Below, one piece after another: positions 1 through 42,068 of a DNA stretch of 64,000 nucleotides (positions are counted from its first letter, which is position 1; every line of letters begins with the position of its first letter). A program made the translations under genes and the position numbers. This DNA is from Thalia democratica (taxonomy: Eukaryota), in contig OZ241827.1 of the NCBI GenBank assembly GCA_965202585.1, positions 14,880,001 through 14,944,000 on the forward strand, in the 5' to 3' direction. The notes beneath the pieces were generated by a model. The model was given only the letters and a program-made list of their open reading frames with translations, searched no databases and was not told where the DNA came from.

Positions 1-1480
1 AAGTAAACAAATATTTAAAGATGTAGAATTTAATGTTTTGTAACTGGAGATTACATTTGGAGGAATAAAGTAAATTACGTTTAGTGTCTCTTTGTACAAA
101 GCCATTATAGCAGTGATACATAGAATCGTAAATAGGACTCGCACAAACTATATAAAATTACATATAAATACACTGATAAAAAGTCAATATACATATGAAA
201 CAACCGTTAGGTTGTATATGAAACATGCTTTTTCAACTAAACGTATTTGCTAAATACAAAATAATATTAAAAAAAAATTATTGGTTTTTTGATAATAAAA
301 TAGAAGGTTTTAGTAATTCTATGTAATTCTAATTCTTGAGTTAATTAATAAATTGTATCCTATTGTTAATTTTAGTTACTCGGTGATTAAGAGGTCTTAC
401 TAAAAATAAGTCAAGACTTAAGGTCATTATAAATAAAGCAAAATTTGTTAAGTACTTTATTGATCATGCATCATTCGCAATAAAAAAAAGAGAAACAATA
501 CATCAACAACTTATAAACAAAAAAGTCCAAATTTACAAAGAACTTTACTAGAGCATCAACTGCAGTAGAAGATGGAGGTAACTCGATCCGGGACATAATG
601 TAGGTGTTCGTTTATTTTCTACTGTGAACTGAGCTTTAAGGAGTTCACCATATCCTTACTCAAAGTGTTAACTTGTCCAACTAAGTCTTTCAATTCTTTA
701 AGCTTGACTTCCTTCATCAAATTTAAAGATAAGACTTCGACTTCTTCGTTCATCTCAGAAACTTTATCATTCCATATATTTTTGAACTCAGGTCTCCACT
801 AATTTTAAGTTGATCTAAGTTTTGTGGTTGATACTCTTTAGCACCGACAACCAGACCAGTAATATCTTTCAAAAAACTGTGGCATTTGACTAAGTCTGAT
901 TCAATTTCAATAGCCCTTTTTTTTCTAAGGTTTTTATTTAAGTTTAGACTCTCAACAACTAACTTTAAAACCTCTTTTCTGATTTTTACAGTTAAAGTGC
1001 GGAAGTTCCTTAATTTCTCTCCAAATTTACTTTTAACAACTAATTCATTATTTGTATGATGGTTTTCATGCTTAGACGCTTTGTTAAGAAAATTATTTAT
1101 ACGCTCACGAGTTTTCATCTTGACTAGATTATTTTTTAAGTTATGGAATAGCGTAAGAATTTCACCAAAATATTTTTCTTCTTTTTCAAATTTATTTATC
1201 CCTAAATCTAGCCCATCACTAAGTTCACAAAAACTATTGAAATTATCTTCAGAATTCGATTTATCTAGTCTGTTATGACAACCTCTATCATTGGCTGAAG
1301 AATTTTTAGGATTATTTTTCTCAAGTTTTTCATTTCTTGTTTTACCCGACTTTTCTAGTGCATTACCTTTGTTTCGACAAAAGGAAACATCTTCTGGACT
1401 CATCTGTGTTACAACACTTGTATTATAGTTTTTACAACCGAATTCTACAGAATTTAAAATGCAACCATGTTCAGGATTAT

Positions 1481-3823
1481 TCTCACGTTTAACTTTGCTT
1501 TTAGTTTCTTTAACTTTTAAACATTGTGCATCTTTAATTTCAGAGGAATTATCAACACAATTTTTCGTGCTATTATTTACAAGACCATTCTTAGACTTAC
1601 TCTTGTTTTGAAGACTTTCAACCTCTAAATTTTGTTCATCACCATTTTCAGAGGATTTATTCACGGAATTTTTGTCACTATTATTTACAGGATCTTTCCC
1701 TGAATTTACTTTGCTTTGAAGACTTTCAACTTCTAAATGTAGTTCATCACCATTTTCAGAGGATTTATTCACAGAATTTTTGGTGCTATAATTTACAGGA
1801 TAATTCTCAGATTTAGCTTTGCTATGAAGACTTTGAACCTCTAAATATTTTTTATCATCTATTTCAGAAGATTTATTCTCAGAATTTTTGATGCTTTCAT
1901 TTACAGGATCTTTCTCAGAATTTACCTTGCTTTGAAGACTTTTAACTTCTAAATGTTGTTCAACACCATTTTCAGGGGATTTATTCACAGAATTTTTGAT
2001 GCTTTCATTTACAGGATCATTCACAGATTTAACTTCGTTTTGAAGACTTTCAACCTCTAAATTGTGTTCATTATAAATGTCGGAGAAACTTTTTTCAGAG
2101 TCTTCAGGCATGACTTTACTATTATTCTGATCAAACTTAATTACTGTCGGTTGGAGAGAACCACTGAGATTCGCAGAAAATAAATTTTCGACGGAACTGT
2201 TCACTGACTTAGCATTTTTAGAGCAAGAAACTACAGGACCATCTTTCACAGCCGTACCAGTTTCCACCTCATTTTGCTTTCTGTTGACATAACTGTTGGC
2301 ATTTATAGACAATTTATTCGACTGAGATGAACTTTTTCGGTCGGAAGTAAAATTTTTACTACTTTTTGAACTATGATTTTCAGTTAGTTTACCGCCATCT
2401 CTATACTTCTTTGCATAAAAATAAAGAACTGCTGCCGACAATCCAATAAATTCTCACGTTTAACTTTGCTTTTAGTTTCTTTAACTTTTAAACATTGTGC
2501 ATCTTTAATTTCAGAGGAATTATCAACACAATTTTTCGTGCTATTATTTACAAGACCATTCTTAGACTTACTCTTGTTTTGAAGACTTTCAACCTCTAAA
2601 TTCACTGACTTAGCATTTTTAGAGCAAGAAACTACAGGACCATCTTTCACAGCCGTACCAGTTTCCACCTCATTTTGCTTTCTGTTGACATAACTGTTGG
2701 CATTTATAGACAATTTATTCGACTGAGATGAACTTTTTCGGTCGGAAGTAAAATTTTTACTACTTTTTGAACTATGATTTTCAGTTAGTTTACCGCCATC
2801 TCTATACTTCTTTGCATAAAAATAAAGAACTGCTGCCGACAATCCAATAAATTCTCACGTTTAACTTTGCTTTTAGTTTCTTTAACTTTTAAACATTGTG
2901 CATCTTTAATTTCAGAGGAATTATCAACACAATTTTTCGTGCTATTATTTACAAGACCATTCTTAGACTTACTCTTGTTTTGAAGACTTTCAACCTCTAA
3001 ATTTTGTTCATCACCATTTTCAGAGGATTTATTCACGGAATTTTTGTCACTATTATTTACAGGATCTTTCCCTGAATTTACTTTGCTTTGAAGACTTTCA
3101 ACTTCTAAATGTAGTTCATCACCATTTTCAGAGGATTTATTCACAGAATTTTTGGTGCTATAATTTACAGGATAATTCTCAGATTTAGCTTTGCTATGAA
3201 GACTTTGAACCTCTAAATATTTTTTATCATCTATTTCAGAAGATTTATTCTCAGAATTTTTGATGCTTTCATTTACAGGATCTTTCTCAGAATTTACCTT
3301 GCTTTGAAGACTTTTAACTTCTAAATGTTGTTCAACACCATTTTCAGGGGATTTATTCACAGAATTTTTGATGCTTTCATTTACAGGATCATTCACAGAT
3401 TTAACTTCGTTTTGAAGACTTTCAACCTCTAAATTGTGTTCATTATAAATGTCGGAGAAACTTTTTTCAGAGTCTTCAGGCATGACTTTACTATTATTCT
3501 GATCAAACTTAATTACTGTCGGTTGGAGAGAACCACTGAGATTCGCAGAAAATAAATTTTCGACGGAACTGTTCACTGACTTAGCATTTTTAGAGCAAGA
3601 AACTACAGGACCATCTTTCACAGCCGTACCAGTTTCCACCTCATTTTGCTTTCTGTTGACATAACTGTTGGCATTTATAGACAATTTATTCGACTGAGAT
3701 GAACTTTTTCGGTCGGAAGTAAAATTTTTACTACTTTTTGAACTATGATTTTCAGTTAGTTTACCGCCATCTCTATACTTCTTTGCATAAAAATAAAAAA
3801 CTGCTGCCGACAATCCAATAAAT
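1481..3823. repeat. Tandem triplication of a 971-bp unit (1481-2451, 2452-2852 with a 570-bp internal deletion, 2853-3823)
   Basis: The identical novel junction ccaataaat|tctcacgtt occurs at 2451/2452 and 2852/2853. The copies look identical except aaagaact (copies 1, 2) vs aaaaaact (copy 3). The middle copy joins ctctaaat|tcactgac. Confidence 0.95.
1524..2063 (-). repeat. Coding 108-bp (36-aa) repeat, 5 full units in A (repeated again in 2896-3435)
   Basis: The translation shows xLEVESLQSKVNSEKDPVNESIKNSVNKSSENGDEQ-like units every 36 aa. Confidence 0.9.
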
Positions 3824-3876
3824 CCAACCATCAGTTCACAAAAACTGACAACAAGTTTAAATGCAGCTTTTATCAT

Positions 3877-40061: not shown

Positions 40062-40425
40062 CTTTTGGTTATATTAAATGGTAGATAATAAGTTTCTTAA
40101 AAAACTTTACTAACATTCTAATTGTTTTTTGTTTGATCAGGTTTGTTTTAGTTATCACATCGAAAAACGAAACTACACTAACTACACTATAGAATATAAA
40201 CAAGTATAAAATGAGGTAAATTACAAATAATTTTAAAAAGTATATGAGAAATTTAAGTTTCCTTGAAAATTAAAAAGTAGTAAACCAACAATTAAAAGAT
40301 ATTTTAATTTTTAAAATATCTGAAATTATTATGTAATACATTAAATTAAATTATTGTATTTCTTGTAATAAATTATAAATTATACTTTTGACTTTAAACT
40401 TTATAGCTCCTTATTAGCAAGTAAA

Positions 40426-42068
40426 ATGATAAAAGTTACATTTAAACTCGATATCAGTTTTTGTAAATTCATGGTTGGAGTTATTGGCTTGTCGGCAACA
40501 GTTGGTGTTGTTCGTTATTTTTCAAAAAACAGATCTAAAAAGTATAATTGTGATACTGGTCGCGTTGCTAAAGATATTAAAAAGTCTGATCTGAAGTTCC
40601 AAACAGACCCGAAACCAGAACCAAAGTGTGCACAAAGTGTTATTAGTATCAAACCAAATATAGTTAAACGCAGTTCAGCAGTTTAAGATCATCCTGAGAT
40701 TTTTCATTCTAAAAATGAAGTCACTGACTTTATCTATTGTTCCGAGGATAATTTTTGTAACAAGTCTGGTTCATTAAAAGAATTTTTCCTCAAAAAAGGT
40801 TATAATGAAGTCGCTTACAATGAATTGGATGAAGGTGATACTTGTGATGTTTAAAAATACCGAGGCACAGAGTCAAAGATCAAAGTTTTGGTATAAAAGT
40901 GTATGAGAATCATATATCATCTCCTCCTTATTAAAATGGTTCTTCAGTAAAAATCTCTGGTAAACAATGCAAGTTGCCGCTAACTAATGCTGAAAATAGT
41001 TCGGCTAATAAGTTGACTGTGGCTTCGAGTGACACTAAAAGTTTTGCTGCCGAAAACAGGGAACGTTTCACTCACAGTCATAAAAACCTGCCATTTGAGG
41101 ATCCAGTTAAAAACAAGCATCAACCAGTGATAGATTGTGATTCAATCACAAACAAACATGCTTGTAGTTCGCAAGTTACGGCCAATGCAGGTTCCAGTAA
41201 AATTTTAGCTGAAGAAAATAAAGATTGTGGTGACCAAACTAGCTCTACCGCGATCAAAAATGGAGTAAGCATCAACAAAAATAACAATAAAAATAAAAAA
41301 AGTTCCTCTGGTAAAAAGGTTCGTAGTTTCTCTGAAGCTAGTGAACCAAAAAAAGATAGAAATGCAGAGAAACCTAATTGTAACACTAATTCTGATGATA
41401 AAAATCACCAACTTGATGCTACAAGCTTTTGTGCAAAAATAAATGAGTGTAAAGATAAAATAACTAATATACAAACATATTTCCAACTACTCCAAAAGTT
41501 ATTTGGTAAAATTGAGAAAACACTTGAAGTGTGTATGAAAAACAAGCAGCAACAACCAAACCAAAACGAAAGAGACCACGTGAATGCCGAAGAAAAACAC
41601 ATTAGAACATTTTTAAAGAAATTCAATGAGGCTACTTCCATTAGGAAGGAGTTGAAAGACTTTAATCGCCTGTTTGCTAATATAAGAATACGGTTGTTAC
41701 AGCAAATCGGAGTTAAGTTGGATATCTCAGATGATACTGAAAGAATGAAAAAATTGAAAGAAATTGAGTCGGATTACTTTTCAGTTAAAAATTTTATAAG
41801 AGAGTATTGCGAACAGATAGTGAACACTGTAGTTTTTATAAGTGAAAATATATCGGAAATAAGTGATGAAACGCTGAAAAAAGATGTTTCAAATTGGAAT
41901 GATCAAGTTAGTATGGTGTATGAAAACATTGAGGTTTTGTGTAAAAGCGCAAACGATAAAGTTAAAAGTACATCAGTTTCGATGTTTGTGAGTAAGTTTA
42001 GTGATTATAGTGACAATCTGCTGAAAAATGTGTTTTTTAAGTTAACTAAAAGTTTCAAGTTGCCTTAA
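40426..42068 (+). pseudogene. Family member D (intact N-anchor and C-terminal domain separated by stops and a frameshift)
   Basis: ttattag|caagtaaaATG at 40426 gives MIKVTFKLDISFCKFMVGVIGLSATVGVVRYFSK. There are in-frame TAA codons at 40684-40686 and 40852-40854. The downstream ORF 40974-42068 is in another frame and starts at a TTG. Confidence 0.8.

Follow-up and report, generated by a model that had tools for sequence, protein, structure and literature searches.

The genome of the pelagic tunicate Thalia democratica contains, in a 64,000-nucleotide stretch (GenBank assembly GCA_965202585.1, contig OZ241827.1), eight loci that a first-pass annotation of the bare sequence had grouped into one gene family organized as repeated divergent pairs. 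We call these loci A, B, D1, D2, A', B', C and D, and we call the whole stretch, C2:14880001-14944000 of an 802-Mb chromosome-scale genome, the window. The question raised by the locus is whether the eight loci belong together and whether their pairing is a property of the family or of its local history. The reading that we hold to be probable, short of firm, is that of a taxon-restricted, tandemly arrayed family whose proteins carry a targeting segment, a variable stalk and a six-helix head, which evolves by birth and death and in which the pairs reflect local history.

Eight loci of one family

The loci were placed by tblastn searches of the window with the long open reading frames (ORFs) and by two profile hidden Markov models (HMMs) built from our own alignments, one for the N-terminal anchor (A1) and one for the C-terminal domain (A2). 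The anchor profile matched at A, B, A', B' and D with E values of 1e-23 to 1e-29 each, and at C with an E value of 4e-12, the last match being split by a frameshift. These are exactly the six loci to which a common anchor of ~35 amino acids (aa) had been attributed. The C-domain profile matched at all eight loci, with E values from 1e-10 to 6e-69 (Table 1).

Pairwise comparisons showed how far the members have diverged. The anchors of A' and B are 65% identical (BLASTP, E 1e-7), with less than 20% identity over the remainder of the two proteins, and A' and D align over 241 C-terminal residues at 24% identity (E 1e-6). In profile-profile comparison by hhalign, the C-domain of A matched that of D with a probability of 96% (E 1e-9), and the C-domain of B matched that of D with an E value of 9e-5 in an alignment spanning the conserved W-N and I-E-x-L block; the alignment of B with A was collinear yet weak (E 0.004). 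The head alignment of 18 members across all subfamilies is collinear. An hmmalign consensus of 37 sequences reads I-R, K, E, F..Y..Q, W-N, E-x-L and V-K in that order, reproducing the motif that had been drawn for the domain.

AlphaFold models of the heads of A' and B were made from separate alignments, of which that for B was shallow. The A' model (predicted local distance difference test score [pLDDT] 84.8, predicted template modeling score [pTM] 0.78) has helices at residues 17-52, 65-87, 95-121, 126-171, 175-201 and 205-223, and the B model (pLDDT 74, pTM 0.60) has helices at 15-54, 60-90, 97-117, 122-161, 167-197 and 207-226, so that six helices lie at corresponding positions. The profile-profile matches, the collinear alignment and the matching predicted helices agree with the earlier proposal of a distantly related helical C-domain at all loci. 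Since this homology comes together with the common anchor and the overall architecture, a single family is the sole reasonable reading of the eight loci, as the first-pass annotation had claimed.

The proteins follow a three-part plan: an N-terminal hydrophobic targeting segment of ~35 aa, which is highly conserved and has a consensus start of MIKVSFKLDVSFC; a stalk of ~250-550 aa; and a six-helix-bundle head of ~200 aa. The genes are single ORFs of ~440-800 codons. In 14 further members from the genome, the same order of anchor, low-complexity stalk and head was found, every one of them in a continuous ORF. The stalks are rich in Ser, Asn, Lys, Asp and Glu, and their tandem repeats vary by subfamily and by copy, with units of 36 aa in A, 28 aa at C4:56 Mb and 10 aa at C4:4.97 Mb, which bears out the description of the linkers as unrelated or repeat-expanded. 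Two D-like genes, at C4:56078826-56082692 and C4:72893614-72897021, contain 7-8 nearly identical 28-aa stalk repeats through which the opposite strand is also open; the near identity of these units indicates that stalk repeats expand fast.

Within the window, the six anchored loci form three divergent (head-to-head) pairs with ATG-to-ATG spacings of 2.1-2.4 kb, and B, A' and B' are whole while the other five loci are broken, in line with the earlier count of three intact members. Self-comparison of the window revealed a duplicated block of ~10 kb that contains the A/B pair in one copy and the A'/B' pair in the other, and these pairs were therefore duplicated as a single unit, as the annotation had also held. 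In the same comparison, the loci D1, D2 and D match each other at 68-78%. Locus A contains internal duplications of 973 bp at 99.9% identity and 403 bp at 100% identity, nested within 1479-3823, and their junction throws the frame. As the other copies in the family are 5-15% apart, repeats this similar point to a rearrangement of very recent date or to an artifact of assembly. Even if the duplications were an artifact, the independent frameshift near 780 would suffice to break the gene. Each point of the first-pass description of the window that could be checked proved right.

Genome-wide turnover, selection and relatives

Searches of the genome with the profile HMMs, which had been proposed as a check, showed a family far bigger than eight loci. 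The anchor profile gave 150 scored matches from 313 candidates, which puts the number of anchor loci at 150 or more; with the C-domain profile, 144 of 222 candidates scored as matches, in the same clusters. The clusters lie on at least six chromosomes (C1, C2, C4, C5, C7 and C9), at C1:29.6-31.0 Mb, C1:39.09-39.19 Mb, C2:14.81-15.01 Mb, several sites on C4, C5:21.4-22.0, 72.2-73.7 and 77.2-79.1 Mb, C7:7.22 Mb and C9:43.7-44.2 Mb, and on unplaced contigs. Of the 144 C-domain loci that were scored, ~55 have a frame that stays open for 430 aa or more; the others (~60%) are short or interrupted by stops. With many paralogs in arrays and a large share of pseudogenes and fragments, this is a birth-and-death multigene family, and the broken loci of the window and of the genome at large agree with the earlier view of its evolution. 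The family grows through tandem and segmental duplication and decays through frameshifts and stops.

The window lies within a ~200-kb family cluster at C2:14.81-15.01 Mb, which we mapped from search coordinates together with the loci whose sequences were analyzed. In searches with B and A', the stretch from 14.809 to 14.998 Mb proved to hold six A/B pairs, of which the last is inverted as a unit. In distance matrices, A', which belongs to pair 5, has its nearest neighbor in the A of pair 1 (0.047). Its partner B' is nearest to the B of pair 6 (0.087) and far from the B of pair 1 (0.147), and the 3' ends of the A copies give yet another grouping. These mosaic relationships show that the A/B units were duplicated jointly and later swapped segments via unequal crossing-over or conversion.

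D-type fragments and three BACK-Kelch exons (95-96% identical) are interspersed in the C2 cluster. The BACK-Kelch exon in the window, at 17415-18737(+), matched Pfam Kelch_1 (6e-22) and BACK (2e-17), and a BTB domain is absent from the same ORF. Its copies at C2:14826303 and C2:14868564 are 95-96% identical, and an 84% identical copy is found at C4:56063569, 15 kb from a D-like gene. The exon belongs to a huge family, with 5798 first-look candidates genome-wide and dozens of copies ~45% identical. A functional link to the neighboring BACK-Kelch gene was rejected because of the size of that family and because its near-identical copies in the cluster are passengers of the same segmental duplication; the C4 copy beside a D-like gene likewise marks the exon as a co-duplicated passenger.

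The ratio of nonsynonymous to synonymous substitution rates (dN/dS), another check that had been suggested, was calculated by the Nei-Gojobori method for copies of A and B. Among five intact B copies (synonymous divergence [dS] ~0.07-0.14), dN/dS was 0.23-0.51 in the head, 0.24-0.63 in the anchor and 0.80-1.38 in the stalk, and all five copies retain frames of 522-527 codons. The 3' ends of the B copies diverge by 3-6%, compared with 6-17% for their 5' coding parts. The A copies gave 0.47-0.95 throughout. A genome copy compared with a contig from the Tara Oceans metagenome gave 0.35 in the head and 1.09 in the stalk, and more distant pairs gave 0.63-0.85. No positive selection was seen in the head (0.23-0.68). 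The B genes are under moderate purifying selection in head and anchor with a nearly neutral stalk, and the A genes are under weak constraint. Surviving copies are thus under purifying selection and are not all decaying, as the B heads and anchors and the genome-Tara head comparison show. By our own calculation, a random sequence of 25% G+C content (GC) has a stop in ~8.8% of codons, and the chance of a 524-codon open frame is ~1e-21; the intact copies are accordingly maintained.

The 5' ends of the genes are conserved at the nucleotide level as well. Nearly all of the 23 members examined have a TTTTACAG-type acceptor 17-24 nt upstream of the ATG followed by a short conserved leader, the AG context at the acceptor being weaker in a few of them. 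The acceptor and leader suggest that the 5' end of the family mRNA is probably made by splicing, either in trans or in cis from an upstream non-coding exon. At the start of the coding sequence (6324-6360 in B, 30700-30740 in B' and the first 12 codons of 13 deep paralogs), amino acids that two deep paralogs share in codons 2-12 are encoded by the same codon in 77% of cases versus 46% expected from codon usage, and the corresponding figures for the head domain, used as the control, are 56% versus 48%. The conserved Val at codon 10 is encoded by the rare GTC in 13 of 18 sequences versus 12% elsewhere. This conservation of synonymous sites at the 5' coding end points to either a nucleotide-level signal or 5' gene conversion. 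Codons 8-11 (L-D-V-S) read TGATGTCA in 9 of 24 members (6341-6348 in B and 30723-30730 in B'), and in one member (L039) they contain a perfect cyclic AMP response element (CRE) palindrome, TGACGTCA; the CRE-like sequence may be a coincidence.

A profile search run exhaustively over 1.84 billion representatives yielded 40 proteins, among them two that look spurious, one a repeat protein and the other a phage tape-measure-like protein. Ten of the 40 matches were looked up; none is named, and all ten come from ENA assemblies. Of seven contigs traced, all are MEGAHIT-style assemblies of 1.9-3.8 kb and five belong to the Tara Oceans marine metagenome project PRJEB4352. The environmental contigs carry 1-1.7 kb of upstream sequence, and the three that were measured have 26-27% GC. 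In one contig, the upstream flank aligns to the A loci at 82-89%, which identifies it as genomic DNA of a close relative. The relatives are found solely as unannotated, AT-rich Tara Oceans metagenome contigs.

Searches of described families agreed with the first-pass statement that the proteins hold no known domain. Pfam scans of the full-length proteins and of 18 head domains gave nothing above threshold, and the scattered sub-threshold matches included no family in more than two members. In a profile search of PDB sequences, designed helical bundles were the only matches, at E 0.001 or worse; the ESM Atlas feature search gave no usable match; and a word-indexed protein search with B, in which 8000 candidates were scored, came up empty. 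Neither the B head profile nor the anchor profile yielded a confirmed relative in scans of JGI metagenomes. A description of such a family was not found in the literature searched, including the Salpa genome paper (PMC10686999).

The structure prediction and fold search that had been recommended gave a confident six-helix bundle with fold matches at noise level. For the A' head, the best Foldseek match in the PDB had an E value of 0.046 and template modeling (TM) scores were 0.3-0.4; the Atlas shape search gave a TM score of 0.52. VIA-align placed the PhoU-like structures 3l39, 2iiu and 2i0m at Z 11.3, 10.8 and 10.5 over 161-173 residues, the top match having a root-mean-square deviation of 4.9 over 169 residues. 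With the B head, PhoU-like chains ranked only seventh, at Z 8.1. By the tool's own figure, the noise level for helical bundles is ~Z 13, and the matches to PhoU-like, BAR, FlgL and designed bundles, being at noise level, were rejected as evidence of membership. The PhoU family (PF01895) was also absent as a sequence match in the Pfam scans of full-length proteins and 18 heads up to E 1 and in the PDB-sequence profile search. PhoU-like proteins, each made of two three-helix bundles, resemble the heads in having ~200 residues and six long helices. PhoU, however, is a bacterial cytosolic regulator with neither anchor nor stalk, and there is no sequence signal between the two. We therefore treat the predicted head fold as a generic six-helix bundle without assignable affinity.

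Pairs, topology and possible roles

The C2 cluster contains seven close head-to-head pairs, six A/B plus C/D, and the cluster at C1:39.09-39.19 Mb contains five with a period of ~19 kb, in which both partners are B-like. One or two further divergent pairs lie at C5:21.97 Mb and C9:43.97 Mb. The biggest arrays are head-to-tail: that at C5:72-73 Mb lies nearly all on the plus strand, and that at C5:77-79 Mb nearly all on the minus strand. A genome-wide test with the anchor loci came out against fixed-orientation pairing across the family. All six A/B pairs go back to a single ancestral pair and hence represent one event and not six, and the largest arrays are head-to-tail; pairing is therefore a matter of local history. 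The head-to-head pairs are local inverted duplications that were later amplified, and not a family-wide constraint. The organization in repeated divergent pairs that had been described thus holds in the C2 and C1:39.1 Mb clusters but fails as a rule for the family. Both genes of a pair are probably served by one bidirectional control region. In several pairs, one partner is dead and the other intact (dead A beside intact B in the window, and a broken A beside an intact B in pairs 2 and 6).

The pairs could instead be functional two-gene cassettes (receptor and ligand, toxin and antidote, or self and non-self) that use a shared bidirectional promoter and diversify through conflict or recognition. 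Pairs 1.7-3.3 kb apart do recur in the two clusters, their A and B partners are strongly divergent in stalk and head, family turnover is high, and stalk dN/dS reaches 1.2-1.4 in a few comparisons. However, the origin of all six A/B pairs from one pair, the same-strand order of the largest C5 arrays and of most of C9, the frequent pairing of a dead gene with an intact one within the C2 cluster, the incongruent histories of A and B and the lack of positive selection in the head make such cassettes distinctly unlikely. A two-gene system thus finds no support in the analysis, and the conflict, immune or reproductive role that the first-pass annotation regarded as typical of such paralogs is not supported by heads without positive selection and stalks close to neutrality. 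A more specific idea, which we regard as a long shot, is that the A/B and C/D pairs are co-regulated two-component recognition modules of a chain-forming pelagic tunicate, with two helical heads, variable stalks and one bidirectional promoter. If this were true, variation in copy number and repeat length between individuals would provide a self/non-self or gamete-recognition code, and the recognition system would be unrelated to the Ig/EGF-based systems of colonial ascidians.

The topology of the proteins was analyzed in 22 members. The best 19-residue Kyte-Doolittle mean, 1.6-2.3, falls within residues 4-37, and the next-best segment reaches at most 1.6, so that one N-terminal segment, and no other, is long enough to span a membrane. 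The charges flanking this segment are mixed, from 0 to +3 on the N side and from 0 to +4 on the C side. The heads contain 0-8 cysteines per member, none of which is conserved, and this mildly favors either a location in the reducing cytosol or a secreted domain free of disulfides. In the mechanism that we propose, the N terminus would take the protein into the secretory or membrane pathway, where it would serve as a signal-anchor tether or be released after signal cleavage; the stalk would be a flexible spacer that presents the head, and the head may be a protein- or ligand-binding module. We consider a membrane-tethered head on the cytosolic side marginally more probable than one outside the cell, the weak evidence for this being the absence of a conserved head cysteine.

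Several observations weigh against the family reading that we prefer. Both flanks of the hydrophobic segment are positive and the small residues GLSATVG form a possible signal-peptidase site, so the proteins may be secreted and not anchored. The A subfamily is weakly constrained and most copies in the window are dead, and the C2 cluster may therefore be decaying. The function given to the head is wholly inferred, its fold matches being at helical-bundle noise.

An alternative is that the proteins are secreted after signal-peptide cleavage as a fast-evolving extracellular material or surface coat, such as that of the mucous net, the tunic or an epithelial surface, with a glycosylated Ser/Asn stalk. 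The N terminus has a signal-peptide-like layout, with a basic start, ~15 hydrophobic residues and then GLSATVG; secreted multigene families typically have a mature part that is hypervariable behind a conserved signal; and the stalks bear 4-16 N-x-S/T sequons. On the other hand, the head cysteines are neither conserved nor even in number, the stalk is rich in charged Lys, Asp and Glu and not in Pro and Thr, and a hydrophobic stretch of 19-22 residues with basic residues directly after it fits a signal anchor too. We consider secretion of this kind unlikely. It is very improbable that the loci are non-functional, that is, recently amplified and decaying ORFs that segmental duplication carries along without an organismal role. 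Five of the eight window loci and ~60% of the C-domain loci in the genome are indeed interrupted, and the A-type dN/dS of 0.5-0.95 would suit such decay, but the five B copies, at dS ~0.1, all keep their frames with constrained heads, ~55 long frames have stayed open despite the high frequency of stops in this genome, and diverged intact relatives occur in independent ocean samples.

The closest analogies to the family are of design and not of descent, and they share no sequence or domains with it. Secreted multigene families such as the conotoxins and amphibian peptides join a conserved signal to a hypervariable mature region. Conotoxin superfamilies and the sea-urchin Sp185/333 genes resemble the present family in their conserved targeting segment or leader, variable part, clustering and fast turnover. 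The family differs from them in its large proteins (440-800 aa) with a conserved folded C-terminal head and in the absence of any sequence relationship; its targeting is a prediction, and an immune or venom context is not known for it. Tom20 and Tom70 of the mitochondrial outer membrane likewise have a short N-terminal tail, one moderately hydrophobic segment, basic residues, a linker and an all-helical domain, whereas the family shows no TPR or Tom-like match in sequence or fold, has a far longer stalk and has a copy number in the hundreds. In the FuHC/fester region of the colonial tunicate Botryllus, polymorphic recognition genes are linked and neighboring genes act together; these, too, are clustered, fast-evolving genes of the tunicate lineage for secreted or membrane proteins, as the products of the family are predicted to be. 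Its proteins contain EGF/Ig or SCR domains, which Pfam scans did not find in the family.

The taxon-restricted, tandemly arrayed, birth-and-death family described here is thus new as a sequence family but of an evolutionary type that is familiar, and it is a well-documented orphan rather than a demonstrated new system. Its loci number more than 140, ~55 of them apparently intact, which places it among the genome's largest families without a name, a domain annotation or relatives outside ocean-plankton DNA. Interfaces such as the surface of a cell or organelle, or a secretion, are the usual place of action for families in which a variable stalk joins a conserved targeting signal to a conserved head. 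The role of the family could explain lineage-specific biology of a bloom-forming, ecologically important pelagic tunicate. The family is also a clean example in which to study the expansion, segment exchange and decay of taxon-restricted families, and the reason why their 5' ends stay constant at the nucleotide level.

Features of the window

The coordinates of the loci, of the intergenic regions between divergent partners and of the duplicated blocks are given in Table 1.

Table 1. Family loci, divergent intergenic regions and duplication blocks in the window
Feature	Coordinates	Strand	Anchor match	C-domain match	Description
Duplication block 1	29-10585				Carries the A/B pair; copied at 25955-35886 with 76-90% identity
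Locus A	619-3876	-	3876	631-1280	A-subfamily pseudogene with anchor, 36-aa repeat stalk and C-domain; near-identical internal duplications and a frameshift near 780
A/B divergent intergenic region	3877-6323				2.4 kb; TTTTACAG acceptor and short leader at both ends, in inverted orientation
Locus B	6324-7898	+	6324	7206-7892	Intact, 524 aa; anchor at residues 1-35, stalk, predicted six-helix C-domain
Locus D1	11473-12021	-		11681-11974	D-type C-domain fragment with stops
Locus D2	22405-23306	-		22597-23019	D-type C-terminal pseudogene fragment with stops; residual 107-aa ORF at 22594-22917
Duplication block 2	25955-35886				Carries the A'/B' pair
Locus A'	26539-28512	-	28512	26551-27201	Intact, 657 aa; 6.3 copies of a 108-nt (36-aa) repeat at 27419-28094
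A'/B' divergent intergenic region	28513-30699				2.2 kb
Locus B'	30700-32277	+	30700	31585-32271	Intact, 525 aa from ATG at 30700; the ORF called mechanically from TTG at 30592 begins upstream of the family start
Locus C	36746-38333	-	38298	36746-37074 (remnants)	Pseudogene; frameshift in the anchor at ~38298, multiple stops
C/D divergent intergenic region	38334-40425				2.1 kb; beyond the short leader, without similarity to the A/B intergenic regions
Locus D	40426-42068	+	40426	41376-42041	Anchor intact; stop ~83 codons after the ATG, then changes of frame; 3' ORF at 40974-42068 (364 aa) with complete C-domain

The GC of the window is 21-36% throughout, without a compositional island, and no runs of N were met. 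A 55-nt tandem repeat of 3.8 copies lies at 32675-32892, immediately downstream of B'. In the gene-poor right half of the window, a 290-nt direct repeat occurs at 45852-46141 and 47758-48047, 1.9 kb apart, with 94% identity between its copies. A 629-aa ORF at 51599-53488(+), in the GC-richest patch of the window (0.36), contains a PARP catalytic domain (E 4e-9).

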